DNA from: Mizuhopecten yessoensis
Lineage: Eukaryota
NCBI RefSeq assembly: GCF_002113885.1
Contig: NW_018407364.1
Coordinates: 1,767,456 to 1,831,455, forward strand
Direction: 5' to 3'
DNA: 64,000 bases
Every line of letters begins with the position of its first letter. Within the stretch, counting starts at the first letter, position 1. This document shows positions 35,411-62,848 of the stretch, piece by piece. Under the pieces are notes generated by a model. It did not search any database. It was not told the DNA's origin and saw nothing but the letters and a program-made list of their open reading frames with translations. The position numbers and the translations under genes are program-made.

Positions 35411-38400
35411 TCAGTCTAGACGTCTTGCAATATCAATGACAGCCTCCATTGCGTAGTTGTTTCCATTTGCACAGAGATTTTCTAAGGTGGACTTGACTCC
35501 TGCTGGTACCTTGATTGGCTCAAACGATCCTGTAATGAAGACAATATGCTATAGGGTATTGGAGAGACAATATCAGTATTGAGTCCGGGTATATTGCAGT
35601 TCATATTGCTATGGTATACTGAATCACCGACTCATACACTATTTTCGCTTTTTATCACATCCCTGGTTTAACATGGATTCTCGCAGATTTTTTCGTTATA
35701 TTTAACGGTTGGGAAAACAAAATGATTATTCATGGTACCAGCATACTTCATACAAATACAACACACTTTGGAGCGTATCAAAAGCATTATTGTTAATCCG
35801 TGTATCATACTTCCACCAGGTTCTGTGTTGTGAAGAAGTCGTTTTTGTTTTGTTGGTTTTGCATTTTGCCTAATATATCTAATCATGTTTAACCATATTT
35901 TATTTTACAACAACAGGAAAATGGTAAACGAAAATCATTTTACAATAGTTATACGAAATCAGCGTAAACCTTTCATTATGTGTAAAGTTGAAATATAAGA
36001 CTTACCGTTCTTGGTGACAACAGTATATTGAACCATGGAGTCTGCCATTGCGTGGAACCCCATACAGTTATAGCCAGACCTATCAGGTGTTCTGTCAATA
36101 CGAATATATGAAATGCTAACATATGTGACGTATTTTCATTGTTTACAATGGTTAAAGTACAGTTTGATTTCTGCCAATATGTCAGAATATAGCGCCCTAA
36201 GTCAGAATATAGCCAATTTGTTGACTGCATGCGCAATAATCTGAAAAATTGTTAAAAATCGAACTTCTGTTGTGCAACAGATTTGCCTACTGGAAACAGG
36301 TGAATAAGTTTTTATAAGTAAACTGAAAAGCCACACTGAAACTACATCTCCACGGTATGAAAAGTTCATAAAAAATTATGCAACCAAAATATCTTTTACA
36401 AATTCTGAATAAATAATTTCAATCTTTTCTTGAAAAATTAGTTTCGATTTTTTTCTTTTTGATCATGGTTAATTGCATTACAGTTAGATATGGGTTTTTG
36501 TTTTGTCAAAACGCCAGTTAGTTATTGATTTTTATAATTAATTATTGGTGAATAAAGAGACAGGGTACATTAACCACCGATTATATAAAAAATATTACTT
36601 ACAACAACAAGAAAAACATATAGTATTCATCAGATTCCTCACACTTGTACACGTTTGTGACGTCATTTAAAGTTCCAATGACTTCCGACCCCTCTATCTC
36701 TATACTGTCGTCCGTTCTGTGTGTATGGTCCTGCACACCGTCCCAATCCCCTCCGTATCTGTCACCAATATTGCAGGAACCTAAATGCACCAACAAAAAG
36801 TTAATAATAAAATGTCTGAAGATGTCTGAAGTAAGTCGTGATCTTGAAAACCACAGTAATTACTATGCGTACTTAACCCCTTAAGTAATTTGAAATAAAC
36901 CAGTACTTCTTTCTTAAATTTAAAATTATTATAATTACAATTCTTATGCACTTCCCTTTCTGTTTCAAGAATAATTTTCAACCAATTTTGATTGCCAAGA
37001 TTTTTTGCCCCTAACATCACCAATGAATCCTAAAGGGACCAAACAGCTGGATGATGCAATGTGATCAAATTTAGCATACTGTATCTGTTATCAATATCAT
37101 TTAAATAAGCTGCACGTGTTTGTGTTATGTTCATCTTTAACTTTGGCATTTTTTATGAATTATTTCGGTCGGTATATGTTCTCCATCGATAATATGAATA
37201 TGGATCATCCCGTCTAATTCTAATAAAATCAATAAATCAATGTTAAAGGGGCAAGCAAATAAATACAACATACGTCTACATGAATTACTATTCGAACAAG
37301 GGTATTAAGAACACATGAATCCTAAAATTATATTGGAAGAAATGACCGTCAGCTGGGACATGTATGTTATTTTATTTTGTTCACATTTTTGTCAATAAAA
37401 TTCACCCCTTCATTTTATTTTGAGAATAGAGAAGAGATACATTATACCTTTCTTAGTATTATTTAATCAATGGGGATACCTTGTAAGAAGACGTTATGTA
37501 TTTTGTGTATATTGAAACTCTCCCCAACAATAACAAAAGTGTAGTTCCTTTTACATTCTGCGTTCATTCCCGTCCAACCCCGATCCGCTCCTTTCAATTG
37601 CAGTGAAACATCTATTCTTGCCATTTAATCTAATGAATCACAAAGTTACCGAAATGACTATTCAACCTAGGTTTTCAAGAACATATGGATCCTCTGGCAA
37701 AATGACCTTGAGCGGGGACAACTCTGCCTTAATTTTCTGCTTAAAATGTATGCATATCTTCATATAAAAAATATATCCTTATTTTTTTGGGGAGAATGAG
37801 TCCATCAATCATGCCGTACTGTTATATCAACAGTTATTCCAGGCTAAGTAACAGTAACTTGAATTCCTTATTTTAGCTATATTATTATCGATATTATTTT
37901 GACATATGACGAAATAGAATCGTTACATATCCGAGTATTTTAGTAAAGAAGTATAACACTATGTCAAGCATTCCGACAACATAGTGAGTGCTTTTGATTA
38001 ACCTCACTACCTGTAAGTTTGAACCCTTGTGCGTATATAACATCCTGTCAAGAAAACTTTAATAGCTTAGACTAAATGTTAGTTACTCACCATAGACCGT
38101 CGTCGATAACACCGCCATACTAAACAGCATAAACAATTGCGCTTGAAACTGAAAAAAAATGGGAAAAAATGATAGTTACTTACGAATAAATAAAGGCCCA
38201 TTGTACTTTTGATATAATAGAAAATAACAGCCTCTCTAATTATTCGCATTTGTTTTGCTGGACGGAGTTATTCATCTGTTTGCAAAAGAAGTAAAATCAA
38301 CAAAAACTTGCGAACTTGTAGATTTTATATAATAAAGCATATTTCATTATCAATAAAAACGCGATAAAAATGTATGGTGCCTGGACAAAGTCACAATTAT

Positions 38401-38562
38401 ATTTCACTCGTCAAATAAACTGACATACAAAGTAAAACAACATTGAAAAACAGAGACGAACTATAATTTCATAAAGATAACACTAGCTTTAAGTTTACAG
38501 TATTTGAATTATCAATTAGGTCAATGGTATAAGTAGTACTATTGGCACTCTTTACTTACCAT
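35411..38562 (-). CDS. Secreted 4-Cys protein, paralog A (143 aa)
   Basis: Exons 38562-38560 (ATG), 38148-38091 (signal FQAQLFMLFSMAVLSTTVYG), 36780-36603 (SCNIGDRYGGDW...YKC...), 36079-36006 (SGYNCMGFHAMADSMVQYTVVTKN), 35529-35411 (GSFEPIKVP...LENLCANG...IDIARRLD*). GT-AG junctions, 432 nt in frame. Confidence 0.82.
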
Positions 38563-38631
38563 GGTGACGTGTTGAAAAGTCGAGGAACAGTTACCAATAA
38601 GTATCTGCTTTGTATGTACAAAACATCCGCC

Positions 38632-38639
38632 TTTATATA
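38632..38639 (-). promoter_or_regulatory. TATA box of paralog A
   Basis: TATATAAA on the - strand, 70 nt upstream of the ATG. Confidence 0.6.
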
Positions 38640-39235
38640 GCGATCAGCTGCAGCAGCATCTGTTATCCATATGGTCACCACACATTGAACAGGTCAATCA
38701 TAGGTCATGAAAAATAGCCACCAGCGATTTCAAGTATATTCTTATAATGAAATAAGTGCTACCTAGTAGAAACGCTTGAGGATCTTTGACATTAATATAA
38801 CCTAGTACACATTCTAGATGATATTTGTTGACACCGTAGATGTGTGAGTTATGTATTATTAAAGACTATAGTATCCCAAGCAGTTACCAGACAGGGAGTA
38901 CAAGAGCATTGTTCCTCAATATTTTGTTGGGTAGTTTTTTTATGTTTTAAAAGGAATCACATCTCATATAGTGGTACCTTAAATTTAGTTAGAAAAATAC
39001 ATGACGTTGATATAATATTGGGCGTTGCCGTTGATGGAATATATGATGATGCTATAGTCTTATACAGTACCTGTATCCGTGTATCATAATAACTTATATG
39101 GTCTACGGTATGTACGTCGATTTATATGTTATCCCATAATAGTTACCAGCAGATTTTACAACCAATTCGTTCTCTTTTAGTGTATTTTCCTTTAGATTTG
39201 TACACTTTTAACCTATTTTAGGTTAAAAACCTGCT

Positions 39236-39330
39236 GATGCGTCCTAAATGGATACAGGTCATGATGCGTCCTAAATGGATACAGGTCATGATGCGTCCTA
39301 AATGGATAAAGGTCATGATGCGTCCTAAAT
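39236..39330 (+). repeat. 27-bp tandem repeat, ~3.5 copies
   Basis: tgatgcgtcctaaatggatacaggtca. Confidence 0.9.
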
Positions 39331-40471
39331 GTAAAAATATTGACTTTGTTTGGCTTGCTCAAAAGGGTGTTTCCTTTCTTTTGTATATCCAATGATTATT
39401 TTATATCAGATACAATCACTGAATAATTTAATACATGTACAAGTGTACTTGATACATCTAGTGACGTACCTTTAATCTAACAATTTACATAAATTTTGAT
39501 TAACTAATACTGTCTGATCAATTAGTATAAAAACAGCATGAATGTATTGTTGCATACTTAGTAACGCATATTGTGCCTGCAACATTTTTCTCGCACAGAG
39601 CCGAAATAATACATATAAAAATAAATCACATTGTCATTCTAAAAAGTGAAAGTGGACAACAGGTCATTTCAACAGAGGCAACAATGCAGCAACTATTCAG
39701 ATAGCTTTCCTTTGATGAGCAGGTTTATATGTACATTTATGTAAAACCTTCCGTTAAAATGCTTCTTTTCTCATAACAAAGTTAAGGTTATTATAGGAAT
39801 GCAGCGGTTTGTGTGCTTGATCAGAGGATCGTGATCATGAATTTTAAACATAAATACATTTCTGTTGACATTGTTCTACACATATCACCGCTCTTTTCAG
39901 CTTATACAATTCAAGTGAACGTTCAATCAAGGAAACCCCGAGGGGTAAATGTGGTAGTTATATAAACCTTTGTCAATCTGTCGCCGCACAATATGTGTGT
40001 ACCATATTGTCCCGATGTGCCGGTAAGTATTGAGAACCGCAGGCAAAGTAGGACATTTACGTCGTGTTATACATAAAATGTGTGACGTAAATAATTTGCT
40101 ATTAGGGACATCAGATTGATTGGTAGGTAAAACTTTTCAAATCTCCATTCTAGAAAGATGATGGTAGCTAACGGAATGGCTTGTTACCATGTTGAGTATC
40201 TATAGTATGGTATATTCCTTAGTAGACTTGAACACCCCAGACGTAATAGAAGAGAATTCTTATAATCACGGCTCGAACTCACGACGGTTAGCGAGAAGGC
40301 TGATATACTCTCTACTGTTGTATTAAGTAACAAGTTCGCGGACATTGTTTTTGGTGTGTATTAATGTTGGTTTTTATGTCTCTATAGTATGTCGAAACAA
40401 TGTGATGATTTTAACAGAAACTGGAGTTTTATCATTTGTGTTGATGTTGACGTAGGCTTGTATAGATATTC

Positions 40472-41302
40472 AATTAGCTGAAACGTTAACTGAAACAGGC
40501 AGGCACTGTAAGGAGATACACTTTATATTTAATTAGCTGAAACGTTAACTGAAACAGGCAGGCACTGTAAGGAGATACACTTTATATTTAATTAGCTGAA
40601 ACGTTAACTGAAACAGGCAGGCACTGTAAGGAGATACACTTTATATTTAATTAGCTGAAACGTTAACTGAAACAGGCAGGCACTGTAAGGAGATACACTT
40701 TATATTTAATTAGCTGAAACGTTAACTGAAACAGGCAGGCACTGTAAGGAGATACACTTTATATTTAATTAGCTGAAACGTTAACTGAAACAGGCAGGCA
40801 CTGTAAGGAGATACACTTTATATTTAATTAGCTGAAACGTTAACTGAAACAGGCAGGCACTGTAAGGAGATACACTTTATATTTAATTAGCTGAAACGTT
40901 AACTGAAACAGGCAGGCACTGTAAGGAGATACACTTTATATTTAATTAGCTGAAACGTTAACTGAAACAGGCAGGCACTGTAAGGAGATACACTTTATAT
41001 TTAATTAGCTGAAACGTTAACTGAAACAGGCAGGCACTGTAAGGAGATACACTTTATATTTAATTAGCTGAAACGTTAACTGAAACAGGCAGGCACTGTA
41101 AGGAGATACACTTTATATTTAATTAGCTGAAACGTTAACTGAAACAGGCAGGCACTGTAAGGAGATACACTTTATATTTAATTAGCTGAAACGTTAACTG
41201 AAACAGGCAGGCACTGTAAGGAGATACACTTTATATTTAATTAGCTGAAACGTTAACTGAAACAGGCAGGCACTGTCAGGAGATACACTTTATATTTAAT
41301 TA
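40472..41302 (+). repeat. 59-bp minisatellite, ~14 near-identical copies
   Basis: aattagctgaaacgttaactgaaacaggcaggcactgtaaggagatacactttatattt. Confidence 0.97.
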
Positions 41303-41329
41303 TTGAAACATATTCACATTTAAAAAATG

Positions 41330-42060
41330 CTTTATATACTAATGATAATTATTCTGGCACTAGTTGGAAGTTACCTTTTAATTCTTCTCAACAAACCTAA
41401 GCCTCTATTTTTTTCCCCAACAAGTAGTTAACATGGTCTTCCCTACTTACACTTTTGTCAACCTTTACACCAAGCAACTTAGCAGACTGAACCTGGTCAA
41501 GATCTGTGTTGTTTAAAGAGTGATCTTTTGTTTTGTAGATATAAGCATACAATTTGATTTATCTGTATTTATTAACATTTTATTGTCTAAACCCCGGTTC
41601 TTACTTGATTGGGGTTGGTTTGTAATTTAAGAGAGGAATCAGTAAGCATTAAAACTTTCGTCGATTTCAGTTTTATCAAATGTTTTACTGTTTGCCATAT
41701 GTTTCATGTTTGGTGTAGAGGTACACTTTTTTGGAGCAAGTTCCCTCACAAATTTACTTGGACTGTTAAGGACTGAAAGTATGTCGTTTTGGCCTCGTGA
41801 ATTTACGGTAATAGTTAATGTAACGAGCCGATTTAAAATGGTCTCTAATGCGCATTCCCTGAATGATGTCGTCGGTCATCCAGTTTGACTGAGAAGCCTT
41901 TTTAACTCGACGTATGCAAAAGGGTGCTTGTTCGTCAACAATGTTGCTGAACAATTTTAAACTTGAGTTCAAGACAAAGGGTTTCCATTTTGGCAGATTC
42001 AATATCACGTCTTCTAGTGAATGGGATGCTGGATTTTACATAGTTTTACACACTCCTCGA
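41330..42060 (-). mobile_element. Degraded CR1/L2-like LINE ORF2 fragments (RT core deleted)
   Basis: IVDEQAPFCIRRVKK..SNWMTDDIIQGMRIRDHFK (endonuclease-RT linker) and DQVQSAKLLGVKVD...EDHVNYL...LGLLRRIK (RT thumb region). Confidence 0.7.
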
Positions 42061-42647
42061 TGACATTGACCATCTTCTCTGTCTGAACGTTCCAGCATAA
42101 AACCCTTTATGGACATTAAGAATTTAACCAAGTCTCTGATATACATGGTGAGAAATTTAGGGTAATTTATTGTATATACTCCTGAAATTTCATTATAGGA
42201 AACAAAGACCACCTGGCATAGTGAAGTTAGATGAATTTTTTGAATTGCCGTATTAAACAGGTAAAGGTAAATCTATCTGGTGACTGCTCAGATGTGACGC
42301 CCGGTTTCCCCATACTGTACCTCTGCTTTATAGACCTGTACACAAAACTATTGTGGAATTCTGCATCTATAGTCACTTAAATTACACATTTCACATCGAG
42401 GTTTTGTAGTGACGACATACATGTATGTACGATAGTCTGCCAATTTTGATTGAGAAATGCGGATTTTGGAACCAGTAGTATCAAAAAGTTTGACAGAACA
42501 TAAATACTAAACTGTGTAGTGTCGGTGAACACAGCACGCTTCATGAATGATGAAGAATTAGTATTAAACAAACAAACTCATTAATCTTTCTTGATGCCTT
42601 GCATTTTAATTTCGAAAACAGGCAATGATATCTTTATCTATTTCATT

Positions 42648-45600
42648 TTATCGGTGATTCTTATTTCCCCTCTTCAGTTTTAGCCCTCCGCTCACAAACT
42701 CATCTGAACACAAATTTAAATATTCGTGATCTGTCTTTTCGGGGATTTCTTCCGGGTTGAAATTGCCTGGAAAAATAATTATGGGTATCATAACACGGAG
42801 GAAGCCATTTTGTACAGGTAAAAATGCATTATTGATTTGTCTATTTAAAAGATTTGCCTCGATCTGTACCCAAAAACATATCTAACCAGTTTATCTCAAA
42901 AAGAGAACATGCGAAATACTTGAAGAAGCAACTTTGTTTATTAAGGAAATAAATATCCATATATTGTCAAGAAACTCTCATATTTGTTTGTTGAAGCTGG
43001 GGTATATTTGTGTCTTTATTTCATTTTTTCTTATTGGTTATGAAATCGTCATACATTTCATTTGCTATAGTATAAAATTGTTCATCTTATATATGAAGTT
43101 CAAAACTGACGTATTCTCTTTTAATGTGATTTATGTTGTTACTCTTCGGGAAATTCTTTTCGAATAAATTGATATGTTAAATGAAAGTTCTATGCAAATG
43201 TACACGAGAGCAGGAACTGTTTCTATCGAGATCAGAGATTGAAACTTACCAGTATGTGTTTTAATCATCCTTTGAAATATATTTCTGCCAACATCAGTCT
43301 TGAGCACACACAGAAAATTATCAGGAATGTCATTGCTTCTGAAAACAGCATTACAGTTATTGTGAGTTAATTATAACGTAAAGATATGACACGTTTAATA
43401 TTTCACAAAGCATTGGCCAACACTCTGATGCAATACATTTTTTTCTCCATAAGATTAGTTATCATCACACCATTTTGACATCTTCACTCTTAGCTGAAAT
43501 CTAACATAGGTCAGGAAGCGACACGGTACTTACGACACGAAAACTGACTTTATGTTGGTATATGTCGCTGTTGAATGACACTTTTATTAAAGTAAAATAA
43601 CTGAATACTTTGTTTCATACCAAACATCACCAATACAGCATTGTTACATTGTCATACAAGATATTTAAGCCAATCAAACGAATGGTAAAAACTGCGAAAC
43701 AGGTTTAAATAAACATTTTCTTACTATAGGAAAAACATGTGTATTACGAAGGGTGGGAAGTCCTTAATATAGGTCAGTGTTAGATGAATGACTCCTTAGT
43801 AGTCTTTCAGCATTTATCTTGGAAGGAAATCATTGTTATGGTAGATCATTTCGCAATATTTTACGAAGCGATAATTGAGCGTTTCATTTTTTGTTATTTT
43901 TTTAGTGTTAATGATGTATGACGTACCTTTCTTTTACACGATTTTTGCAGCTTGCAAATAAAGCAGAACTTGGCAAGCGTAAGAGCAGTAGGTAAAGCAG
44001 AAATTTAAACTGATACTGTAAAAGCTGTAATTTGAATATTGTGAGACTTATTCGTCGTTCCTTTACGTAAGTCAAAAGGTAAACAAACACAGACAAGCTT
44101 GAAAACAGCAAGTAATGCAGACATTTTAAATTGAATTAGTAGAAGCTCATCTTTTGAATATTTTGAGACTTATTCGTTCCTTTACTTACATCCAAAAGCA
44201 AAAGAGAAACAGACAAGAGTGAAAACAGCCAACTGCAATAAAGCAGACATTTGAAACTGAATTTGCAAAAGCTCTTCGTTTGAATATGTTGATACTAATT
44301 CGTGACTTTACTTACATACAAAGGTAAAAGCGAAAAGGACAAGCTTAGATACAACAAATAAAGCAGACATTTGAAATTTGTAGAAGCTCTTCGTTTGATT
44401 ATTTTGAGATGTATTCGTTCCTTTACTTACATCCAAAGGTACTCGCCGTAGAAAAGTCCTTTATCGATACACTTGAATGCTCTTGTGACCCAGTCTGTGG
44501 TCACCTCAATGTTGTTTCCATCCACCACAACTGTGTCATTCGTATTTTGTAAATCATCCGACAGAACAGTCCATTTTCCCTGCATACTTCGACTGATATC
44601 ACAATCATCTGTATCTATATCTGAATCTATGAATTGATGAAAGTTATTTTATGATGTGACAGTAAACGATTATTAAAAGGTAATGAACGGAATGTTTGCA
44701 GTGTCATTGGTGGTGTGGACAAACATAATTTGCATGCATGTAACTTGGTTCTTGACCAATAGGAAATATATGAATTGAACAGAATTTTGTCAATTTGATT
44801 GTTGGTGTCAAAATATATGCATGTGACTGTCAATGTGATATAAGAGTTTATGATACTGACTTTTCATATATTGCGATAAAATAATTTACTGTCAATATGT
44901 TATACAAGATAATACAATGGACATGTTACTGTCAATATGATATACAAAGGTAATACAATGGACATGTTACCGTCAATATGATATACAAAGGTAATACAAT
45001 GGATATGTCACTGTCAATTTGATATACAAAAATAATACAATGGACATGGAACTGTCAATATGATATTCAAGATAATACAATGGACATGTAACTGTCAATA
45101 TGATATACAAGATAAAACAATGGACATGTAGATGTCAATATGATATACAAGATAATACAATGGACATGTAACTGTCAATATATACACAAGATAATACCAT
45201 GGACATGTAACTGTCAATATAATATACAAGATAATACAATGGACATGTAACTGTCAATATGATATACAAAGGTAATACAATGGATATGTCACTGTCAATT
45301 TGATATACAAAAATAATACAATGGACATGTAACTGTCAATATGATATACAAAGGTAATACAATGGACATGTAGATGTCAATATATACACAAGATAATACA
45401 ATGGACATGTAGCTGTCAATATGATATACAAGATAATACAACGGACATGTAACTGTCATTATAGATACAAGATAATACAATGGACATGTAACTGTTAATA
45501 TGATATACAAGATAATACAACGGACATGTAACTGTCATTATAGATACAAGATAATACAATGGACATGTAACTGACAATATGATATACAAGATAATACAAT

Positions 45601-48600
45601 GGACATGTTACTGTCAATCTGATATACAAGATAATACAATGGACATGTAACTGTAAATATGATATACAAGATAATACAATGGACATGTTACTGTAAATAT
45701 ATACACAAGATAATACAATGGACATGTAACTGTGAATATGATATACAAGATAATACAACGGACATGTAACTGTCAATATAGATATAAGATAATACAATGG
45801 ACATGTAACTGTCAATGTGATATACAAGATAATACAACGGACATGTAACTGTCATTATAGATACAAGATAATACAATGGACATGTAACTGTCAATAAGAT
45901 ATACAAGATAATACAATGGACATGTAACTGACAATATGATATACAAGATAATACAATGGACATGTAAATGTCAATATGATATACAAGATAAAACAATGGA
46001 CATGTAACTGTCAATATGATATACAAGATAATACAACGGACATGTAACTGTCAATATAGATACAAGATAATACAATGGACATGTAACTGTCAATATGATA
46101 TACAAGATAATACAATGGAGATGTTACTGTCAATATGATATACAAGATAATACAACGGACATGTAACTGTCAATATACATACAAGATAATACAATGGACA
46201 TGTAACTGACAATATGATATACAAGATAATACAATGGACATGTAACTGACAATATGATATACAAGATAATACAATGGAGATGTTACTGTCAATATGATAT
46301 ACAAGATAGTACAATGGACATGCTACTGTCAATATGATATACAAGATAATACAATGGGCATGTAACTGTCAATAGGATATAAAAGATGATAATATAGATA
46401 TGTTATTGTCAATATGATATACAAAGATAATACAATGGATATTTCACTATCAATATGATATACAAAGGTAATACAACGAACATGTTACTGTCAATATAAT
46501 ATACAAGGGTAATACGATGGGCATGTTACTGTCAATATAATATACATATAAAGCACTAGTTTCTGTCAATTTGTTGATAACACGTGCGTCTATTATCACT
46601 ATGAATTACATATAAAACGATATCATACGTGTCATTGTTAGTTACCTTATCCCCTACACACATACCTGATTTCGTAGTCACACATAGAGCAGCAAACAGT
46701 AAAAGAGAGGCTGCCTAGAAAAGATAAGTAAATCGCTTATAAGGGCAATGGTCCCATTATTGCCATGTTTGCTGGGTCTTTTTTCATTATCCTCTCCACT
46801 TCGACGACATCACGCAGCTGGAGGATGATTTTTATTATGTATAATCCTCCCAATATTCACAGAATTATCTCGCGGTTTATCAGTTGAGGATTTTTCTGTC
46901 ACCCCTTTGAATATGATTTCTCTGTCACCCCTTAAGACATGATTTTTCTTTCAGGCCATAAAGGTATGATATTTCTGTCACCACACCAAGGTATGATATT
47001 TCTGTCACCACACCAAGGTATGATATTTCTGTCACTACACCAAGGTATGATATTTCGGTCACCACACCAAGGTATGACTTTTCTGTCAGCATACAGGGTA
47101 CGATTTCCCTGTCATTCCCTAGGGTATGACAGATAGCACGTGACAAAATATATACTATGGCGTCACGGGAAAAATTAGACATGACGCCAAAATCAGCTGA
47201 AACCTGTTGTTTTCAAACACAGGATTGAAAACCGGAAACATAGCCATCCCCTACCTTGAGAGTGTTAAAGAGAAATTTCCAACACTGGTGGTTATCATCT
47301 GGTTGTCTATCCCTTGGATTAAACAACCACAAATGCCAGCATGGTTGAAGATTTCTCTATCATACCCTCAAGATAGTGGATGATTCTATTAGTCAAACAT
47401 AATTAATATGTGTGGATTAGTAAACACGTTATATCTATTCAACTAAAATATTTCATTATGCAGATTCTGATAAACAACAACTTAAGATCTCGCAAGATAT
47501 TGTCAGCATACATGCTACGCCATAATTAACGTCATCATAAATGTCTAATTATAACAACACCTCTCTTCTAAAATTGCCTAAAATATTAATTAATTATATA
47601 CCCCCTCATGTCTCTCAGACACTGAACCCTCGTACAAACTGACTATTCTTAAACATGACTCTCAAACCTATTGGTCTCTGCATTCTAGGCTCTTTGCACA
47701 GACGTCATGTATATGTACATACCACCCTTTATTTATTCATTTATATGCACATTGAGATGCTTATCTTCTTGCTTAACGGGTAATGGTGATTGTATGCCTT
47801 TTTAGTTGTATCAAATTGTATAGGGCGCTATACACATGTTGTATATCATTATTATTATTTTGATGAAAAATAAAATTAGTAAACAATAGTGTCAAAACAT
47901 CACCACAAAGTAAACCATAACGTCACATAAACACATGGACTTACCAAATGGTTTACATATAAGGATAAAAAGTATAGCACAGTACCATAACCTCACAAAA
48001 CATTTAACAGCGGCAAACCACACGGCCAAACTTAAGTGGATATCAACAATTAGGAACAGAAAAGCACAAGAAACAAACGTACCGAAACGTTCACACTCCA
48101 AGACAAGGTATCCAACAGCATCATCACACCACCACATAAAATACCACAGCGTTAATACACAAGCACAGAAACTTATCAAATGTTATACAGAATAGGATAA
48201 AAAAATATACCAAATGTTTGTATACCATTACACCAATACACACCATGACAAAATATTAAACAGCGTCAACACATACGGCCAAAATAAAGCGGATATCTGC
48301 ACATAGGGACAAAAGATACCTCAAGATTGAAACGTACCGCAACGTTAAAGCACCAGGACAAGGTCTTCAACAGCATCATCACACAAACACAAAATATATA
48401 TCACAATGTCAACTCACAAGGACAAAATATACTTCAAGATTGAAACGTACCGCAACGTTAAAGCACCAGGACAAGGTAATCATCAGCATATTCACACCAG
48501 GACAAAATATACCACAATGTCAACTCACAAGGACAAAATATACCACAATGTCAATTCTCAAAGACAAAATATATTTCAAGATTGAAACGTACCGCAACGT

Positions 48601-49120
48601 AAAAGCACAAGGCCCAAGACCAGGTCTTCAACAGCATCATAACACCAACACAAAATATATATAACAATGTCAACTCACAAGGACAAACTATCCTTCAAGA
48701 TTGAAACGTACCGCAACGTTAAAACACCAGGACAAGGTCTTCAACAGCATCATCACACCAACACAAAATATATATAACAATGTCAACTCACAAGGACAAA
48801 ATATACTTCAAGATTGAAACGTACCGCCACGTTAAAGCACCAGGACAAGGTAATCAACAGCATATTCACACCAGGACAAAATATACCGCAATATCAACTC
48901 AAAAAATATATCCCAGCGTTAATATCTCTGGACGAAATTTCATTTACGAAAGACATAAACAGCGACCGAGAGATAAAGCGCTTTCTGTACCAACACGTGA
49001 CCGCTGTGGTTACGTCTCTTGAAAATATGAAAAAATGACAAACCTTTAAGATATCTCTCAAAAAATAATCTTTTGACGTCAATATAAAAATTCTAAGATA
49101 TCACTCACCTTGTACTGCAT
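42648..49120 (-). CDS. Secreted 4-Cys protein, paralog B (148 aa)
   Basis: Exons 49120-49109 (MQYK), 46714-46666 (AASLLLFAALCVTTKS), 44608-44431 (DCDISRSMQGKW...FKCID...), 43338-43250 (SNDIPDNFLCVLKTDVGRNIFQRMIKTHT), 42766-42648 (GNFNPEEIP...YLNLCSDE...LKLKRGNKNHR*). 447 nt in frame, same phases as A. Confidence 0.8.
43955..44440. repeat. ~120-bp degenerate tandem repeat containing the paralog B exon-3 donor
   Basis: Four units with aaataaagcagac...ttcgttcctttacttacatccaaa. Confidence 0.8.
44815..46545 (+). repeat. 40-bp minisatellite, ~43 copies, intron 2 of paralog B
   Basis: atacaagataatacaatggacatgtaactgtcaatatgat. Confidence 0.97.
46885..47110 (+). repeat. 27-bp tandem repeat
   Basis: atttctgtcaccacaccaaggtatgat. 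Confidence 0.9.
48300..48900 (+). repeat. ~115-140-bp tandem repeat, ~5 copies, intron 1 of paralog B
   Basis: caagattgaaacgtaccgcaacgttaaagcaccaggacaagg recurs. Confidence 0.9.
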
Positions 49121-51480: not shown

Positions 51481-52048
51481 TTTAGTGTTATTTTTGAAAC
51501 ATCACCAATTATGACGTCATTATTAAGAGTTGGGTCAATGGTATTATGATGTCACATTGACGAGAATTACCATGATGACAAGATGTCAACGTAAAATGTT
51601 TGAAGATCGTAAGAGAAAACATATTTGTCAAGGCAATTTACACAAAGGGATATTATATTCTCGCATAACCTCATCATAAGCTAGCATCATAAATTATTCA
51701 TGAAACGGAGGCAGATTTAAAGTGATACATTGTCATTGCCATTTATATATGCATGTGGACAATATATCACGCTCACACAGAGAGTGTGAACATATAATTA
51801 ATTAGTGTTTAGTGTAGTAACATATGCCAGCGTTTCATTTATAGACAACGAAAGTTTACAATTTTACAGTCACTGCTTAAGTAAACACATATCTTAGCAT
51901 CTTGTGTTTTGTGTAATGGAATCTATTTTTTTTGATGACGTAGACATTGTGTTATTACCTACACAAATATGACGTCACAATATAAGGAATGATTTCAAAC
52001 ATATGATGGCATTACCACTACGCAAAAAATGCAAGAATATCGTTCGTA

Positions 52049-52369
52049 CTATTACACATACGAAATGACGTAATTACATAGAGAATACATAAGCACTGCT
52101 ATTATTATTACAATTGCAAAGACGATGTCAATATACGACAGACATACATGAGCATTATTAAAAGTGTAGCATACATAACGATAACTTCCGTTTTAAACGG
52201 TGTAATCACATGCTTAAGTTAATGTAACATAAAGAGAAGTTACGTTATGTATGTTACATCTTTAAAACAAAATGCTCATGTATGTCTGTCGTATATTGAC
52301 ATCGTCTTTGCAATTGTAATGATAATAGCAGTGCTTGTGTAAACGTCATTTTCTTATGTGTAATAATAG
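52049..52369. repeat. Long inverted repeat / foldback element
   Basis: aagcactgctatt...gacagacatacatgagcatt paired with aatgctcatgtatgtctgtc...aatagcagtgctt. Confidence 0.85.
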
Positions 52370-53521
52370 AGCATTTAATATATATATTGCGATGACACAG
52401 GGAATAAAAAAATAACTTCAAGAATTCAAATATTAAAATAGGGATAATATAAAGCGTAAACTTTATTTTTGTCTCCGACTTTTTTCTGACGATCTCTTAT
52501 CAGCAGAAGCTCTAACATGTAAGTAATGACAATCTTGATTGAGCAATTGTTATACCATCTAACATACTTCATGTATGAGTGTTATGCATATGATACTGTT
52601 TTTATGAATTGTTGTGATTTTGCATACAATGTTTGTATAATTTTGTATTTACACTTATAACATACAAATCTCAATCATATTTAGCTGATATAAACCAATG
52701 AATTTTGTTAAAATAATTTTAATCACTCATTAACATAACCATGAAAATGAATCATTTTAGCTGATATAAACAGATGAATTTTGATATATTTAAAACAACA
52801 CTTATTAGCATTTTCTCAATCAGTATTTCTTGTTAATAAAACACGCTTCCTAATTTGTGAATAAAAAAGCGTGTTTACCTGATATTTTAAAATATTACCT
52901 AGAAAATAATATCGTATTTGAAAATAAAATCGAAATAATAATAATAACAAAAACCTCGCCAATCGCGTAATTTACAAATCTGGAGTCTTAAAACTCTAGA
53001 AAAACAAGGAAAACTTAATATGTCCCATATAAGGTTAAAAGTAACCGAAACAACTTTCCATTTGATATGGACCGAATATATAGGCGTATTGCCTGTTTTC
53101 TGAAACCGTTCTCATGCTCAAGCAAGGATTGTATGCTCAAGTCTAGTTTCTTGTTCCGCTTATCAATAATTTAAAAAGTTTTATTTTGTCAATACAATTG
53201 CCTTTTTGATCGATTGACATGATTTATGTGAGTTACAAAAAAAATTGGTTTAAGCAAGGAATTCATACTTGAGCATGAGAACGGTTTCATGAATACGGGC
53301 CCAGGTCTTAGAAATAATTAAGCATTATTCGAAACAGACGTTCTAAGTATTTTATTGAAGAAAGTGTGACATCGTATAATGTACTTGTACATTACTGGAG
53401 ATATACTGTTATCAATACCAGTACATTGCCACTAAAGCCGTTACGCGGTTTTGTTGATTTCGTTTTGATATACTCCATCAGACATGGTTATTGCGTGACA
53501 GTTGTATCGTCCAAGGCATGC

Positions 53522-56500
53522 TTAAGCATGTAACTGGTGTTCATAGGATCGTCTAATGTCCAATGCAGGTCGTCTTCTTGCGTTACCACATAAGTGTTCG
53601 ATGGTGTGGCCACCTCTTCCTGGCAAATCTTTTGGAGCAAATTCACCTGTACCAATAGATCAAGATTGGTTATAAACAGAAGCAAACAAGACGTAAATAA
53701 TCTTATTGTAATGTACCACACAGATAGATCTAGATTTGTTATAAACAGAAGCAAACAAGATGTAAAATAATCTTATTGTAATGTAACACAGATATATCTA
53801 GATTTGTTATAAACAGAAACAAACAAGACGTAAAATAATCGTAATGTAATGCAACACACAGTATTGAGGATATCTTACAATATCTCAAAGCAAAATGTTT
53901 ATCAGTGTAGTTTATTTAACAATATTGGAAATACTTGTACTGTCAAGAAAAGACTAAACCCACTGCATTTTACAAAATAAATCAAAATACATGCACTGAA
54001 TTGGAAGCCATCGTGTACACATTGAGCTCTATATTTGACAATTAATTGCCCCCCCCCCCCCCACCCCCACCCCTTAAATTTAACACAATTTTTTTCAGTC
54101 CGCTACAGTGAATTAATGTGTATACAATGACATCATTTTATAACATGCAGTCGTATCAATAAGAGAAATCATGTTATTATTTAAACACATAAATTGCAAG
54201 TAATTAATACAAAGCATTTCGGAATATTTAAATAATAAAAATGTTTTAGAGAATATTCAATTTAAAAGTTTTTATTTGCTAAGAATTCCAACATACCAGT
54301 GTTTGTTGACAACGAGTACTGAACCACGGAGTCCATCATGATAGCTCTGTATACACAAAGGTACTTACTACCATTCTCAGTCCTGTAACATTTTGACAGT
54401 TCAATCAGGTTTTAGATTCTTTCGCAAACGACTTTTCAATCTATCTAAATTTCTAATTGAGAGTTTTTTTTTTAATGTTTCCAATATTTCACATTGCAAT
54501 CAAACACAAAAGTCACGCATGCACCTAGAAACAAACATACGTGAGCAGATGTATCGACAGTGCTTAAAACCATTTCAGTGTGGCATGAATCAGTACGGTG
54601 ATTATCTTTACGACGGCTTGCTTTAAAGCTAATATTAGGCGGCACAAAGTAATGCTTCTGACCTCACATGACGAATCTCTTAACATTATTACTGTATGGC
54701 AACATTGATTAAAATGTTAATTCACCTAATCTCGTTTAAAATTTTTGATATCGTGAACTGAATATTCAACTGGTTTTTTTACAATCATTGTCACAATTTA
54801 GTTTCATCATTGCACATGTAAGTCTCCTTCGAAAATCTCATAGCTTCAAATATAAACATAAAAATGCACTTCATATAAGCAAGAGTAACTTAAATAGCAA
54901 GTGACATCAACAAGAGTTTTTTACATAAAAAATAATTTTGTAATCTCCGTCGAAAAGTGTAACGTAACATCAACAAGAGTTATTTACATAAATAAATGTA
55001 ACCTACGTCGAAAGGTGTAACTTAACATCAACAAGAGTTATTTACATAAATAAATGTCATTTCCGTCGAAAAGTTTAACTTAACATCAACAAGAATTTAT
55101 AACATAAATAAATGTAATCTCCGTCGAAAAGTGTAACTTAACATCAACAAGAGTTATTTACATAAATAAATGTAATTTCCGTCGGAAAGTGTCACTTAAC
55201 ACCAACAAGAGTTATTAACATAAATAAATGTAAGTTTCGTCGAAAAGTGTCACTTAACATCAACAAGAGTTATTAACATAAATAAATGTAATTTCCGTCG
55301 AAAAGTTTAACTTAACATCACCAAGAGTTATTTACATAAATAAATCCAATTTCCGTCGAAAAGTTTAACTTAACATCAACAAGAGTTATTAACATAAATA
55401 AATGTAATTTCCGTCGGAATGTGTCACTTAATATCAACAATTTTGACTTACATCCACAAGGAAGTACTGCCGTATTGATTCTCTCCTTTACACACGTATG
55501 TCGCTTCTGCATCCCGCACGTTGACATGAATTGTATTACTTTTCATAATAACGATCCAGTCGTGTGTGTCCATGTGGTCAAGAACTCCGATCCATACCCC
55601 GTTCATCTGCTTTCCAATATTACACAACCCTACACAATGTAGCCAAACATATTAAGGAGAGCAAGTATTAAATGAAAGACCAAAAATTCACTTATGGATG
55701 TACAATTGAACTGATGTCTAATAGTTCATGAAAAGTAGAATTTTGTGTGAATGTTTTTCATTTTGTTCTTGAAAATATTTATTAAACACCTTCTTGCAGG
55801 AAAAAAAGTCAAATAACAAAAGAAAAAGATAAACGTTTTGGTTATGGATGAAAAAATATTAACAAACATAAATGTAGAATTTCTTTAACAATAAAAAGAA
55901 CATACTGTATTTACAAATAACATGAATAAGGAAACGATATCTATTAACATTAAGTTATAGTTTCTGAATTCTTCAGTCTGAAGAGCTATTCGGATTCGAC
56001 TACCTGTATCCTGAAATAACTCTGACTTTCAAGTTACCAAACATCTTACTTTTTGACGCTGTGCCTGCAAACACGCTGCCTTCGACAGCAAATATTGCCC
56101 CACTTAGGAAGACACAAAGACCAATCAGGATCTGCAAGCAAACGGCATGAGATAAGCTATATATTATATTAACATATAAAATAAGAGACATCAGTTTAGA
56201 AATTTGCAAAATCAATATTTTATTTTATACACAAACATTGTACGTATTTAACGTGTCGCAAAGTTTCAAGACCGACTGGGCCCTTTGTCAAGCTATGACT
56301 GATTGAGCGATGTGTGTTGTTTACAGGTCTGCTGAACGTTGTGACGAAATTATATATTTCTTATGTCACTCGATCCCGGACGTTTCGCCTATCGATAGAG
56401 AACGATACACACACTGTATCGAATAGTATGTTAAATGTGTAATACGTACATTGTTTATTTATAAAGTCACACTTTAATTGTATGTACTAATATTTTGATT

Positions 56501-58171
56501 CTTGATCGAAAACAGAAGTTCATCTATTACAAGCAGGCATGAGGGTAATGGTAATGTGTAATGGTAATTAATTGCAATTAATTACATTTTGTTAAGTAAT
56601 TGGATGTAATGTGTAATTGAGGATTTTTTCAATTACATGTAATGGTAATTTAATTAATTACATTGAAAAATGTATGTAATGCCCAATTACTTTTAATTAC
56701 TTTTAATTACTTTAATGTTGTGTGTTGATGTTTCATGATCCTTTATACAATTTAATCAAATAGAAAGTTTCCAAAGTAAATATTTATTATGTAAGGACAC
56801 AGGTAATAAGAGGTTATACCTGTATTGATCCTAATCCCCTATTCATAGCTTAGCTATTGTCTCCTTCACAGAGACCAGGTAACTTGTGATTTTGATATCA
56901 AAAGATTGCCACACAGTGAGTACATGTATCATAACAGGGTTGACCATTCAGAACATTCAGAACATTCTATCTTTGTAAGGTTGAAGTTATAGTGAACAGT
57001 ACTAACACTGAATTAAACTTTCACTTGAAAACTTGAACAACCACATTTGAGCCATTTTTAAATTCCCAAACACACAACAGGGTATTTTATGGCAATATGC
57101 ATGGATTTCTTCAGTTTTCTGCGAGCAACCCGAAGGAAAAGACACCAATCTGGGTTGGCACCAAAGGAAGTAGAGAAATATCTCGAAAACCTTTGTATTG
57201 ACATGGAGGATGACCCAATGTCATTTTAGCAAACAAATCCTGTCCAAAAACCTGTTCTGTCAAAACTTGCTATCAACTATTTGACTATCACATCATCTTC
57301 AGCTTCAGTCGTGAGACTATTCAGTTTTGCCGGGAAGATGGATTCCGCCCAGACAGATGCCGTCTAAATGACGAAACTTTTGAACATCTGATGATGATCA
57401 AATGCAATATGCATGTTTACATATATGTAGTGTACGCTGTCTGAGCAGAACATCTTCCCAGAGCTGAGTACATGTACATACCATGCGAGTGTATACATAC
57501 ATTTTGTATATATGTAGTGATGTAAATTCCCTATATGAAACACAAACAACAGGTTCATAACAGATAAAGGTAAATATGTCATTTAAACTTGTATTTTTAT
57601 TGGCTTGGATTAAAAATAATATACCGAGAATATTAAATAAAGTAATGTGTCATGGTAATTAATTACATTGTCATGGTAATTAATTACAATGTAATTAATT
57701 ACCATTACAATTACATTAAGAAAACCATGTAATGGTAATAGTAATGGTAATGCTACTTTTCCAATGTAATGTGTAATTTAATTAATTACATTACCAATGT
57801 AATTGCCCCATACCTGATTACAAGCATGATTAACTTTTGTGGTCATATATGTTTTTATGATAATCTCACAAACAACAACTGGCTCATTGCCATCCTCATT
57901 TCTGATAATTTCTGATAATAACGATAAAAATGAATACGCACTATTGCGTTTATTAAAGTGAAACGCTCAAAAACTGTTTAAAGTCTCCATTAAATAATCG
58001 GTAGTACCCATATGATAACACATGTTGGTTGAAATGTGATTTAGATAATACAAAATGTATATATGATCACCAATATCTCCACGCTGAATCAGCATCTATC
58101 ATTCAATATAGTTTACTCATGTATATACTTGTTAACAATTTAACTGTCAATGAGATACTTACTCGTTCCAT
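53522..58171 (-). CDS. Secreted 4-Cys protein, paralog C (159 aa)
   Basis: Exons 58171-58163 (MER), 56131-56050 (ILIGLCVFLSGAIFAVEG...ASK), 55629-55452 (LCNIGKQMNGVW...YVC...), 54382-54297 (TENGSKYLCVYRAIMMDSVVQYSLSTNT), 53646-53522 (GEFAPKDLP...IEHLCGN...ALDIRRSYEHQLHA*). 480 nt in frame. Confidence 0.82.
53648..53865. repeat. ~65-bp x3 repeat abutting the paralog C last-exon acceptor
   Basis: gttataaacagaagcaaacaagacgtaaataatc repeated three times. Confidence 0.85.
54885..55460. repeat. ~59-bp tandem repeat abutting the paralog C exon-3 donor
   Basis: acttaacatcaacaagagttatttacataaataaatgtaatttccgtcgaaaag, ~9-10 copies. Confidence 0.92.
56534..57816 (+). mobile_element. Internally deleted hAT transposon in intron 1 of paralog C
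   Basis: CAGG...CCTG ends, 8-bp TSD ATTACAAG, (GTAAT)n subterminal arrays, residual dimerisation-domain peptide PVLSKLAINYLTITSSSASVVRLFSFAG...RPDRCRLNDETFEHLMMIKCN at ~57240-57410. Confidence 0.9.
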
Positions 58172-58246
58172 GTTGCGAGATACAATGCCTTTCAGTCTTT
58201 TTGTCGCTTTATGTAACAACCCGTGTGTTAAATCAAATACATCGTC

Positions 58247-58253
58247 TTTTATA
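58247..58253 (-). promoter_or_regulatory. TATA box of paralog C
   Basis: TATAAAA on the - strand, 76 nt upstream of the ATG. Confidence 0.55.
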
Positions 58254-59274
58254 GAAACAGTTGATAGATGCAACATTTGGCTGATGCATATATTATGGTT
58301 GTCATCCACGCAGAACACCAATCACAAGTCCTTAGCATAATTGTGATGTCGTAAGCGCTACATGCTAGTCAATACTACATGTATGACCGAGTACTTTAGT
58401 AAAACAATGTTGATCTTATCTAAGGTAAGCCTATAATAAACTTTTTTTTTTTTTTTTTACAGTTTTGATACATGTAATATTACAGGGGTTATTCATTGAA
58501 CAAAAATAACACCCATGGCCACCGTACGCTACTGTACACTGCTACCTATAATCCCGACTATGTTTGTCGTCCGTTTGTGATGATTTCTAACTACGTATCT
58601 TTGACTATTTTACGTACACTGTACTATCACTTACCAAAGTTAGTAGTAACTTTGTACTTGGAACTGGAACGTTTTGGGGAAAACAACCTTCCTCTTTTAG
58701 CTGTATGTTTTGTTTAGACGAATAAATGGTAAATCTTAAATAGACGAAATACTTATATGGAGCAGTGAAATGTTTCCTTTTTATATTTTGGCTCTCAGCA
58801 TCAGCAATTTAATTTTTGACAAAGGTGATTTCTGCTTTGTGTTCATGGATATTTCCTGTCTGTACCTTTTGCTTTGTTCTATTTGTTTTCTCTCAGTTAT
58901 GTAACCTCTGCTGTTTTTACTGCCATTTGCATTTATTCCGAGTGTCTAGTGTCTGTTTTGTCTGTTTGCTGTGATCCTGGCTGTGTGCCAGTCCGTGTGT
59001 ATATAACAAATGTCTATTTTTAAAAGCAATTCGACCCTTTCTCAAGACACGTGTATGATACAACCATGTACAAAATACGTTTCGAAGCGACAAGTATTAA
59101 AAATGTAAAGATGTATAACTTCTTTTAAAAATTATGAGAATGACGTAAACAGATAAAACAAAAGGAAAACAAAAACGATCATGAGGTTTGGTAAATCTTT
59201 AATGTTAAGTCTAGACATTGTAACAATGACTCTATAATTATTAATCAACTATTTATATTTATCCTTCGCGTAGA

Positions 59275-62200
59275 TTATCCGACAAAGTCTTGTAGCACTG
59301 CTGTGTCAGTATAGTCCCTCTGTAAGTCCAATGCTACCGACCCGTCAGTAAAGTTTCCACACGCGGCTTCAAATGTGAGAACTTCAGGTAAGGGACTTAA
59401 TCCTTCAAATGTACCTGTTAATAGAAATAATAATTTCAAGATTAACTGAAGAAACAAGCGTAATAGAGAATAGATATTTGAGTACTAAACCTGACTTCGA
59501 AATCGATAAGGTAAGACAACAACAGGAACCGTGTAGAACCAAAACAAGTGGAAAGATGTCCCGCACTGAAAACGGAAGTAACACTTAAGATATGACATCC
59601 GTCATGGCGTCTCCCGTCAAAATCAACCCTCAACTAACATTAATCTTAACCAATAGCATGTTCGTGTCACTAAAGCAATAAAAAAATTTATCGTAAGAGG
59701 CTTTATTTTTATTTTTAATTTTGTTTGTTTAAATCAACATCGGGGGAAACATTATTCATGTCACATATTTTACATGGAATTATTTTGTTGATATCTAATA
59801 TTAATATATGTAGTATGAGGCCTTCACAACTGTTTCGTTGTTGTGTATGTTATGTATTTTGTTTTATCTTCCAAATATATAGTATTCATACAATTCAATT
59901 TTCGATTCTACATACCACTATTTTTTACCGACAGACTTAATCAATACCCACCTAATAGCAATCGCTAACAATATATTACGGATTCGTAGTAAAGTATAAT
60001 AATTAATCGTAAGAGATATGTTTTATTTTGTTTGTGTTCCCAAAACAAAGTTGCACTATTGCCCTACCATTGTTGGTAAACACGGAGTAGTCAATCCCGG
60101 AGGAGTCGTCTCGGAACTTGAAGGCAAGACAAAGGTAGGAGGAACCGTTAGAAGATCTGTTGGCATAACAATAAGTAAAATATGTTTAAGCAGAGTCGAC
60201 TAATAACAACAACGAATGGCGTACTTCATTGATATGTGTTAATATTAATGATAAGTCGAGGTTCTTATATACTGCTTTATCACGACCTAGTTCGTAGGTC
60301 GTCTCAAAGCAGTTCAACAAATATCATCCGTGGTTACAAGGCCTTTGCAACCAGCCAATATATTTCTCAACTCCCTGGGGAGCATACAGCCGGTGCTGCC
60401 CTTTCGGCGCTCACAGCTAGCGTTCAACAATTCTAGCACTGCCCAACCACGTACTCATTTACAGTTGTTGAGTAGACTAGAACAAACGGAGTAAAGTATC
60501 TTGCTCAAAGATACAACACAGCGCCGTTTCGTGACTCGAACCCGCAACCCTTCGGTTACCACGAGCCCGGCGTCCTACCACTAGACTACCGTGCCTCCGT
60601 GTAGTAGGTTTTCGTCCTTCATACTTGATTTGTTGCGATCACACAAACAACTGACTAGATTGACGGATACATTGGATTACTGATTTTCACGATATAACCA
60701 CTATCTGTTAAAATGTTTTTGAGATTGCATTTCAAATCAGTTTTTTGCGTGACTGTTAATTTTGATAGTTATGAGAGTTTTTAAGAGTTAACAGAAATTG
60801 AACATCTATCAACAACACTGTATGCACTAATTGCAATAGGGGCTTGAACGACTTCCAAAGTTCATTCATGCATGAACACAAGTGGCAGCATTGAATTTTT
60901 CAACTTAGACTTTGTAAAATACAACAGAAAGATGTACTACAACTATTATCACGCTTGTCGTAACGTGATGTTGGACACTTTCAGTATAATGTGATATTAT
61001 AAATGTATACTGATGTAACATGACGTTGTACTACTTACAACATAAGGCTGTTGTATCCCTGTGCATCACCATCTATACAGTCAAATGTCTGTGTTATTCC
61101 ATCTATAGTGACCTCCATCTCGTTATCATCGATGATCACGTGATCATCTGATACCTTGTCATTCAGGATCCTGTTCCATTTCCCCTCGTAATATTGTTCG
61201 AGCCAACATGATCCTTTAAGCAAAGTAAGAGAACTTAAAATAGATATAGCTAGAAGAATGACAATAATAACTGCATAAAAACCTGATCATGGTTTGTCGC
61301 AGTTGATTAGATATTAATGCTAATTTAAATTGGCTGTTTAATCTGCATGACATTAACCTTACAGTACTTGTACATTACAGCACGTGCTCCGTACAACACA
61401 CAGTTATATGGCAGAAACTTACTTTGTCTGAGTAACTGCAACAGTTAAATTTAGCATTCTTTCTTCTAAATATGATACTCACTTTCCGAATCGTCTTCCT
61501 CTTGATCCGCTGGAAAGGAAAAAGACACCGTTACTGATGCTTACCAAAAAAAAAAAAAAAATGATGACGGCAAAAGCAATTTAAATAAATGTGTATTTAT
61601 AATGAACCGTCAACATTCCCTCCACAACAGTAATTTTACAACACTAACGTCCAGGTAAGTGCTGTTTCATTCAAAGCGAAAAACAGTGTAATTTTCGTAT
61701 TGCATTTACATGAATAGCTTGGCAATATAGTATAAACTGACCTGACTGATCTAGATCTAAAAAGTAGGGGAAAACATCACCAAGTTTGTCTTTAGCGTTG
61801 TATCATGACGCCAATTGTGTCTTTATCACGAAGTTAAAGCACCATATGTCTGATATAGCAATTCTGTGGTATACTCACACGTTACTGTAGATGACAGTAA
61901 CAGCATCACAGCAAAGGTAGCAAATATCTTGAAACATAAAAAAGAAGGATGTAGAATTTAATTTCAGCATTTGAGTAGTGTAAAACCAAATAAAGACAAA
62001 TTAACCCAATACTGACAAAGTTAGCCTTATACAGTTAGATAAATTACAAGGGAAACATAAACCAAATAAAATCGAGTATATCATCACTGACAACAAAACT
62101 GAAAAAAGTTAAGTATATAACAGCTTACAATGTTAACTTGATACAGGCAACTGTATTACAATATATATGACAATATAACGCATTATGTAGCCAACTGTTT

Positions 62201-62796
62201 TACAATGTATACTAAACGATTTAGGAAATGACAAAACAATTTACTGGTCATTCCGTGTGTCTGAATAAAGACTCCACTGGTTTGCAAACGCAAAGCTTAT
62301 CGTTAAATGGGCGGAATTTGTTTAGACATATACCGCATAACAAGTAAAAATATTCCTTATGCATGCATTTGAAAGACAAACAAATCCTTTTGATATGTAG
62401 TTACATATCTCATAGAAATGTTTACAATGTTTGTAAAAGTTTAAATCGAATTAATGTTCGGAACACAATATCGTATGGTCGTTAATAACTATTTGTAACA
62501 TATTAAGGCCTTTGTCGACTGTCGATCTGCATCTTCAGTCTATTCCGCCGTTCCTGGTTATTGTAATATATATTTTATCAAGGCTTTATTTAATTCCATG
62601 GTTTAATAAAACATCGTAACTAAAGAGAACTTTATAAAATATTATTTATGTTCTTATCAATATTATATTCATAATTAATTAGGTCTGAATCATGTAAATA
62701 GTTGCACAAATAAATAAACAGTAAATTGAAATATACAGTGTATTTTCATATTATGGACACACCAATTAGCTCGCCCATTCAACTTACCGTGTACAT
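59275..62796 (-). CDS. Secreted 4-Cys protein, paralog D (162 aa)
   Basis: Exons 62796-62788 (MYT), 61927-61879 (IFATFAVMLLLSSTVT), 61509-61483 (27-nt microexon, SDQEEDDSE), 61213-61039 (SCWLEQYYEGKW...FDCID...), 60156-60068 (SSNGSSYLCLAFKFRDDSSGIDYSVFTNN), 59414-59275 (GTFEGLSPLP...EAACGN...ALDLQRDY...*). 489 nt in frame. Confidence 0.82.
60330..60598 (-). mobile_element. tRNA-headed SINE with Nin/Deu-type core, intron of paralog D
   Basis: The - strand has A box GGTAGTCTAGTGG, B box GGTTCGAGTC, ttgagcaagatacttta and CTGTATGCTCCCCAGGGAGTTGAG. Confidence 0.8.
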
Positions 62797-62848
62797 GGTG
62801 TCCGGTTCTTTGTTTTCACCTGATGTCCACATGTGGTCAGTGCGTACA

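Follow-up and report, generated by a model that had tools for sequence, protein, structure and literature searches.

Four tandem scallop genes for small, putatively secreted proteins with a predicted calycin-like barrel and a remote link to DUF7042-7045 domains

The stretch of Mizuhopecten yessoensis DNA analysed here (64,000 nucleotides (nt), free of any N, hereafter the window) lies on scaffold NEDP02004037.1 of assembly GCA_002113885.2, where record position equals 1767455 plus window position, and carries on its minus strand four intact paralogous genes, A to D, each encoding what appears to be a signal peptide followed by one compact barrel domain. The explanation that we consider best, at a probability of about 0.55, is that the products are secreted calycin-type barrels which form a divergent branch of the DUF7042-7045 domains and bind an extracellular ligand. 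They are seen as secreted calycin-like barrels of DUF7043 type and not as a new kind of system. The genes themselves were already known, since NCBI holds a product at all four places and those of A, B and C are RefSeq entries named 'uncharacterized protein LOC...'; a preliminary description of the window, which considered them missed, was therefore right only with respect to a prokaryote-style track of open reading frames. What is new is a corrected exon structure of gene D, which RNA supports in part, together with the assignment of a fold, the remote relationship to DUF7043/7044, and the data on synteny and selection.

The gene array is defined by a common exon and motif plan. In stop-free stretches of the minus strand, C-x7-G-x-W was present exactly four times between 35411 and 62796, the last-exon motif G-x-F..P..C..[LI]-x-[LI]-x-R occurred four times as well, and AG/GT-bounded exons of the sizes first stated were present. 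Each gene begins with a tiny phase-0 exon and a hydrophobic signal exon, continues with a large core exon carrying C-x7-G-x-W ... [YF]-x-C and a small exon carrying [YF]-x-C, and closes with the exon bearing the last motif. Public proteins were collected by exon-wise queries and a profile search and then mapped back onto the window, giving the models of Table 1, in which all introns are GT-AG and the spliced A, B and C translate identically to RefSeq proteins. The scans and splice models agree with the four intact minus-strand paralogs of the preliminary description, several details of which had to be revised. The phases 0,1,2,1 hold for A, B and C, D being the exception; the 175-178 nt proposed for the core exon fit A, C and D, and not B, where the acceptor at 44626 of the RefSeq-identical model makes it 196 nt; and the range of 74-89 nt for the small exon loses its lower end, exon 4 of A being 86 and not 74 nt, with 86-89 nt in the others. 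The array edges and coding starts also shift to those of Table 1, as 62796 proved to be a second in-frame Met of D, 12 codons downstream of the start at 62832 in the NCBI model. The NCBI gene range of A amounts to 3152 nt. A tblastn search of the window with protein A recovered the core exons of B (E 1.2e-5) and C (E 9e-6) and no further family copies, a match at 50839-50768 (E 0.92) being taken as chance.

Table 1. Genes of the array and their exons (window positions; coding exons in order of transcription; aa, amino acids)
Feature	Position	Strand	Coding exons	Exon lengths (nt)	Phases	Product	Basis
Gene A, LOC110454851 (P0001)	35411..38562	-	38562-38560 (ATG only), 38148-38091, 36780-36603, 36091-36006, 35529-35411	3, 58, 178, 86, 119	0,1,2,1	147 aa	translation identical to RefSeq
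Gene B, LOC110454870 (P0007)	42648..49120	-	49120-49109, 46714-46666, 44626-44431, 43338-43250, 42766-42648	12, 49, 196, 89, 119	0,1,2,1	154 aa	translation identical to RefSeq
Gene C, LOC110454865 (P0005)	53522..58171	-	58171-58163, 56131-56050, 55629-55452, 54382-54297, 53646-53522	9, 82, 178, 86, 125	0,1,2,1	159 aa	translation identical to RefSeq
Gene D	59275..62832	-	62832-62788, 61927-61879, 61509-61483, 61213-61039, 60156-60068, 59414-59275	45, 49, 27, 175, 89, 140	0,1,1,2,1	174 aa	no internal stop; length equals NCBI product at this place
Micro-exon of D	61483..61509	-		27	1		frame restoration, RNA donor, Y. balloti counterpart
Core exon of A	36603-36780	-					motif scan
Core exon of B	44431-44626	-					motif scan
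Core exon of C	55452-55629	-					motif scan
Core exon of D	61039-61213	-					motif scan

Whole-protein identity among A to D is 22-35%, and since the pairwise BLASTP E-values lie between 2e-14 and 2e-5 (for a notional database of 1e8 residues) the similarity is far beyond chance and indicates paralogy. The mature domains of 126-133 aa contain exactly four Cys each, which are invariant or nearly so in 16-20 sequences across scallops and oysters and presumably form two disulfides. One Gly, one Leu and one Phe of the alignment are invariant, as is nearly the Trp of G-x-W (Phe in the two-domain relative P0011); G-x-W stands at the start of the first strand, and an Arg is mostly conserved in the last. 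Secretion of all four proteins is suggested by a run of ~13-20 hydrophobic residues, judged by eye, that follows a short N-terminus, precedes the first conserved Cys and is encoded by its own exon. In the structural models the N-terminus is unstructured or of low confidence; other hydrophobic segments are absent, and each protein has one to three N-x-S/T sites.

The composition of the proteins bears on the idea that they are structural or secretory products of shell matrix, mucus or byssus, in which acidity would serve mineral or matrix interaction. The mature isoelectric points of A, B and D are indeed low (pI 4.0-5.1), an Asp/Glu-rich stretch lies between signal peptide and barrel in B and D and in Pecten and Ylistrum orthologs, and the family, as far as found, is confined to shell-forming bivalves. 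However, C is near neutral (pI 7.2), A is devoid of the acidic stretch, low-complexity or repeat regions are absent from the proteins, no shell, mucus or byssus proteome paper containing their accessions was found, and a compact ordered barrel under moderate purifying selection would be untypical of matrix proteins; a matrix role is thus regarded as improbable. In one paper on bivalve shell proteomes, lipocalin is named solely in connection with another clam.

Structure predictions were made for A and C, while D was represented in the protein searches by exon queries and by its Ylistrum balloti ortholog, P0006. The AlphaFold2 models (predicted local distance difference test (pLDDT) 85.8 and predicted template modelling score (pTM) 0.76 for A; 81.7 and 0.71 for C) show the same order of elements, namely a short helix, seven strands, a loop with a small helix and a final strand, and predict that the domain of about 125-133 aa is an eight-stranded up-and-down antiparallel barrel of calycin/lipocalin-like type. 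The strands of A span residues 31-37, 41-50, 53-58, 61-70, 76-80, 86-94, 102-106 and 137-144, those of C being equivalent, and strands A-D would be encoded by the core exon according to the model of A. The loop between strands G and H bears the fourth Cys and a helix of 4-5 residues (124-127 in A, 134-138 in C). Foldseek returned no match at E 1e-3 or better, and its weak matches were all calycins (Tp0751, C8 gamma, ZinT/YodA and salivary lipocalins). With an exhaustive structure aligner Tp0751 came out on top for A and C alike (Z 9.3 and 10.1, with 98-100 residues aligned at a root-mean-square deviation of 3.3-3.5 A), followed by BtaiB, an immunity protein of the type VI secretion system (Z 7.6), and then by a large number of lipocalins at Z 5-7; potempin E, a protease inhibitor, matched at Z 5.0-6.4. 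The leading matches of the fold searches are without exception barrels of calycin type. Tp0751 has been described as a compact eight-stranded, non-canonical lipocalin (PMC5040251). An APCDD1-like reading was also considered and found no specific support, as its Z of 4.7-5.8 is no better than that of many calycins and no sequence match accompanies it; a search of the family profile against PDB sequences, lipocalin and APCDD1 chains included, gave no meaningful match.

The only consistent sequence relationship points to a set of domains of protostomes. When the exons were scanned separately against Pfam nothing usable was obtained (only DUF7044 at E 0.19 for exon 3 of B), and scans of whole proteins found DUF7043 in 8 of 16 members and DUF7044 in 7 of 16, all in one register that places protein residues 22-106 on profile positions 2-82. 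The gathering cut-off of DUF7043 (PF23070) is 27 bits; A scores 19.8 bits (E 1.1e-3), its orthologs 22.2-24.5 bits and the D ortholog P0006 13.2 bits, B and C give no DUF7043 match, and the two-domain relative P0011 passes with 30.2 bits. For A and B the nearest structure in the ESM Atlas is an arthropod DUF7042/7043/7044 protein (template modelling score by query 0.65 for A and 0.59 for B), and their named language-model neighbours all carry DUF7042-7045. Because the sub-threshold register is consistent and the nearest Atlas structure carries DUF7042/7043/7044, the proteins can be filed remotely under DUF7043/7044: among the DUF7042-7045 barrel domains of protostomes, the bivalve family stands as a divergent branch of stand-alone proteins, and it is not a member by the Pfam rule. 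The lineage-specific family of secreted four-Cys proteins first proposed thus persists as a group of small, signal-bearing proteins with four Cys, and loses its standing as an orphan. That no named gene could be recognised agrees with our results: the Pfam matches are to DUFs below threshold, no strong hit to a characterised family appeared, and no paper was found naming DUF7042/43/44 or the LOC or XP numbers of the scallop and oyster members.

It might be supposed that the proteins are true, if diverged, kernel lipocalins (PF00061). The G-x-W at strand A is the first structurally conserved region of kernel lipocalins and is present in the scallop proteins together with the conserved Arg in the last strand and the eight strands, and one oyster relative bears the automatic UniProt name 'Salivary lipocalin'. 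Against this, no lipocalin family emerged when eleven family proteins, A, B and C among them, were scanned against Pfam (E limit 10 for A and 1 for the other ten), the PDB profile search was likewise without a lipocalin, the domain falls short of a kernel lipocalin by about 40 residues, strand H is followed by no long C-terminal helix, the short helix being placed between G and H, and the fold matches do not exceed the range given above. Kernel lipocalin membership was rejected on these grounds and is strongly disfavoured.

The array is part of a family of narrow known distribution. A profile search of 1.84 billion representatives returned 11 proteins, ten of which come from scallops, oysters and transcript assemblies, the eleventh being a bacterial Ig-like protein (E 7.5e-4) that was taken as chance; a word search with the family alignment contributed extra oyster and transcript-assembly members only, and as found by sequence search the family appears restricted to scallops and oysters. 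The array is not limited to four genes, as was first believed: immediately past the window end (about 65633 to beyond 68171), upstream of D and on the same strand, lies a fifth family gene with a 272-aa, two-domain NCBI product that has a faint DUF7043 match and is also hit by the second domain of P0011 (tblastn E 9e-7). Similarly, Y. balloti has a 273-aa gene in this position. The order in M. yessoensis is 272-aa gene, D, C, B, A, MIEAP; in Y. balloti it is 273-aa gene, D, B, A, MIEAP, and in Argopecten irradians D, B, A, MIEAP, so that D-B-A-MIEAP is kept in both other scallops. The downstream neighbour of A that anchors this synteny is a MIEAP-domain (PF16026) gene on the plus strand (25411 or lower to 30748; 421 aa), with counterparts of 391 aa in Y. 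balloti and 423 aa in A. irradians.

Since A, B and D each group in the tree with orthologs of other scallop genera, their duplications are placed before the split of the genera compared. Gene C is intact although it shares only 22-35% identity with its neighbours; the corresponding arrays of Y. balloti and A. irradians contain no ortholog of it, no close relative was found among the 1.84 billion proteins, and its branch in the tree is long. The missing orthologs in the two arrays and the long branch leave two histories for C, which may either be old and lost elsewhere or young and fast-evolving. For A, three species pairs gave ratios of non-synonymous to synonymous substitution rates (dN/dS) of 0.19-0.30, and for D the ratio was 0.11-0.14, values that indicate purifying selection on both genes, as the preliminary description had expected from the unbroken frames.

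Gene D differs from its paralogs in having six coding exons. The five-exon model first proposed was rejected: with T as the last letter of exon 2 (61927-61879) and GA as the first letters of exon 3, their direct join reads TGA, and a further 27-nt micro-exon of phase 1 is required. This exon encodes an acidic linker between signal peptide and barrel. P0006, the Y. balloti ortholog (73% identity to D), shares this linker, and its gene has a six-exon plan too (51/46/27/175/89/140 nt) with its 27-nt exon in the same position. RNA was mapped to one stretch, 57300-63200. In each of two studies (X1, X2), contigs connect 59411-59414 with 60065-60068 and 60156 with 61039, the ends reading GT..AG on the minus strand, and the latter junction is backed by two raw X17 reads as well; by these joins (59414|60068 and 60156|61039), which cross the 3-4 and 4-5 junctions predicted in the preliminary description, exons 3, 4 and 5 of the common plan (the 175-, 89- and 140-nt coding exons) are spliced as modelled. 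The donor of the micro-exon is confirmed by a single X1 contig that connects 61213 with 61483; on the acceptor side the same contig continues unspliced to 61837, and RNA support ends short of exons 1 and 2. Contig depth over the D exons is low (about 8-12), and the raw-read PolyA run X22 has no reads over them.

Other features of the RNA data concern the DNA around the D exons. Further X1 contigs of comparable depth lie over introns (62148-62694 and 59599-60094, for instance), and run X1 therefore contains pre-mRNA or genomic DNA. Very high depth, up to about 79,000 in X1, was seen at 60255-60648 in intron 3 of D and at 58285-58678 in the gap between C and D; as 85-89% of the reads there extend into unlike sequence in two raw-read runs, these stretches represent copies of a dispersed repeat that is abundant and is transcribed elsewhere. 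A scan of them against Rfam yielded only a chance-level match, at 60164-60256, beside the first repeat.

As regards function, the array comprises four tandem paralogs in the window, with the two-domain fifth gene just outside, each expected to yield a signal peptide and a single compact barrel domain. Once secreted, the barrel may behave like a lipocalin and bind a ligand, which would most probably be a small molecule of hydrophobic or amphipathic nature, and paralogs that have diverged to 22-35% identity on a conserved scaffold could differ in specificity. Both small-ligand binding and paralog-specific preferences are suggested by analogy; among the carrier, defence, mucus, gamete and shell roles that had been listed for the family, the predicted fold favours the ligand carrier. 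A more explicit proposal, in which the barrels are carriers whose paralog-specific ligands include, for example, dietary carotenoids, sterols or the algal lipophilic toxins accumulated by scallops and oysters, can be put forward only tentatively.

Several observations weigh against secreted, ligand-binding calycin barrels of this ancestry. No protein of the window reaches the Pfam cut-off of any family (13-20 bits vs 27), the signal peptides were assigned by eye, the lipocalin matches at Z 5-7 fall in the range that the aligner labels 'a common arrangement', the domain of ~125 aa is smaller than kernel lipocalins, and evidence of expression is limited to D, at the low depth reported above and with none in X22. 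In addition, Tp0751 has been reported to act by protein and matrix binding and not through a pocket.

This last point leads to the main rival, according to which the barrel is a closed scaffold that binds proteins or matrix and would serve, for instance, as an adhesin, as an inhibitor of proteases or toxins, or in immune recognition. The top structural match, Tp0751, has been reported as a mediator of adhesion to extracellular matrix (PMC5040251), BtaiB and potempin E are among the other matches, a domain this small would leave little room for a calyx, and fast-diverging tandem paralogs are typical of immune and effector families. Nevertheless, Tp0751, BtaiB and potempin E share only the general barrel (4-10% identity), the combination of G-x-W and a terminal-strand Arg recalls ligand-binding lipocalins, and the expression data contain no link to immune challenge. 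The closed scaffold is held to be less probable than a secreted barrel with a bound extracellular ligand, the explanation that we favour.

Tandem repeats lie in and beside gene B. A 40-base-pair (bp) minisatellite (44888-46546, about 41 copies, 89% match) occupies most of intron 2 of B and creates many spurious minus-strand open reading frames, all of which open with the same short peptide; a hydrophobicity scan for exon 2 of B was swamped by these frames and was abandoned, the exon being located only by mapping the RefSeq protein. Moreover, a 126-bp tandem repeat (43992-44437, 3.7 copies, 75% match) starts in the last 7 nt of exon 3 of B and spans its splice donor, so that donor-like copies recur inside intron 3. 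Between A and B lies a 59-bp tandem repeat (40466-41309, 14.3 copies, 99% match) which has probably expanded recently, since it is very homogeneous.

Taken together, these data point to a small secreted barrel scaffold that was duplicated and long retained in scallops. An unnamed bivalve family is tied to the DUF7042-7045 domains and to a lipocalin-like fold, which provides a testable idea for uncharacterised LOC proteins, and the practical gain is an improved annotation. If it is true, the carrier proposal would offer the first functional handle on the DUF7042-7045 superfamily of protostomes.

Among known systems, DUF7043, DUF7044 (PF23071) and DUF7042 (PF23069) provide the only consistent sequence-family matches, in one register; proteins with DUF7042-7044, which are as uncharacterised as the scallop family, likewise come closest to A and B among predicted structures and in language-model comparisons. 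The scallop proteins differ from them in having a single domain and 147-174 aa and in being putatively secreted; the arthropod clusters that match best measure ~615 aa and have all three DUFs. Tp0751 (pallilysin of Treponema pallidum, PDB 5jk2) has, like the models, an eight-stranded antiparallel barrel with a short capping helix; it is, however, a lipoprotein of a bacterium, lacks all four Cys and is 8-10% identical to the scallop proteins, and common descent is not implied. The ABD1 and ABD2 domains of APCDD1 (PDB 8e0p, 8e0r) are similarly extracellular, disulfide-bonded barrels that are distantly lipocalin-like, and ABD2 binds lipid (PMC10193966); they differ in superposing over about 160 residues with a helix-and-loop insert, and in forming a two-domain, membrane-anchored protein. 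Kernel lipocalins such as ApoD, RBP4, epididymal RABP, nitrophorins and insect salivary lipocalins (fold matches at Z 5-6.6) are 160-180 aa long, against about 125 aa here, and possess a helix after strand H that is missing in the scallop models, whose barrel is encoded by three exons of phases 1,2,1, a further difference. They are nevertheless secreted barrels of eight strands stabilised by disulfides, as is predicted for the scallop proteins; both groups have G-x-W at strand A and an Arg in the last strand, and both occur in tandem arrays of fast-diverging paralogs.

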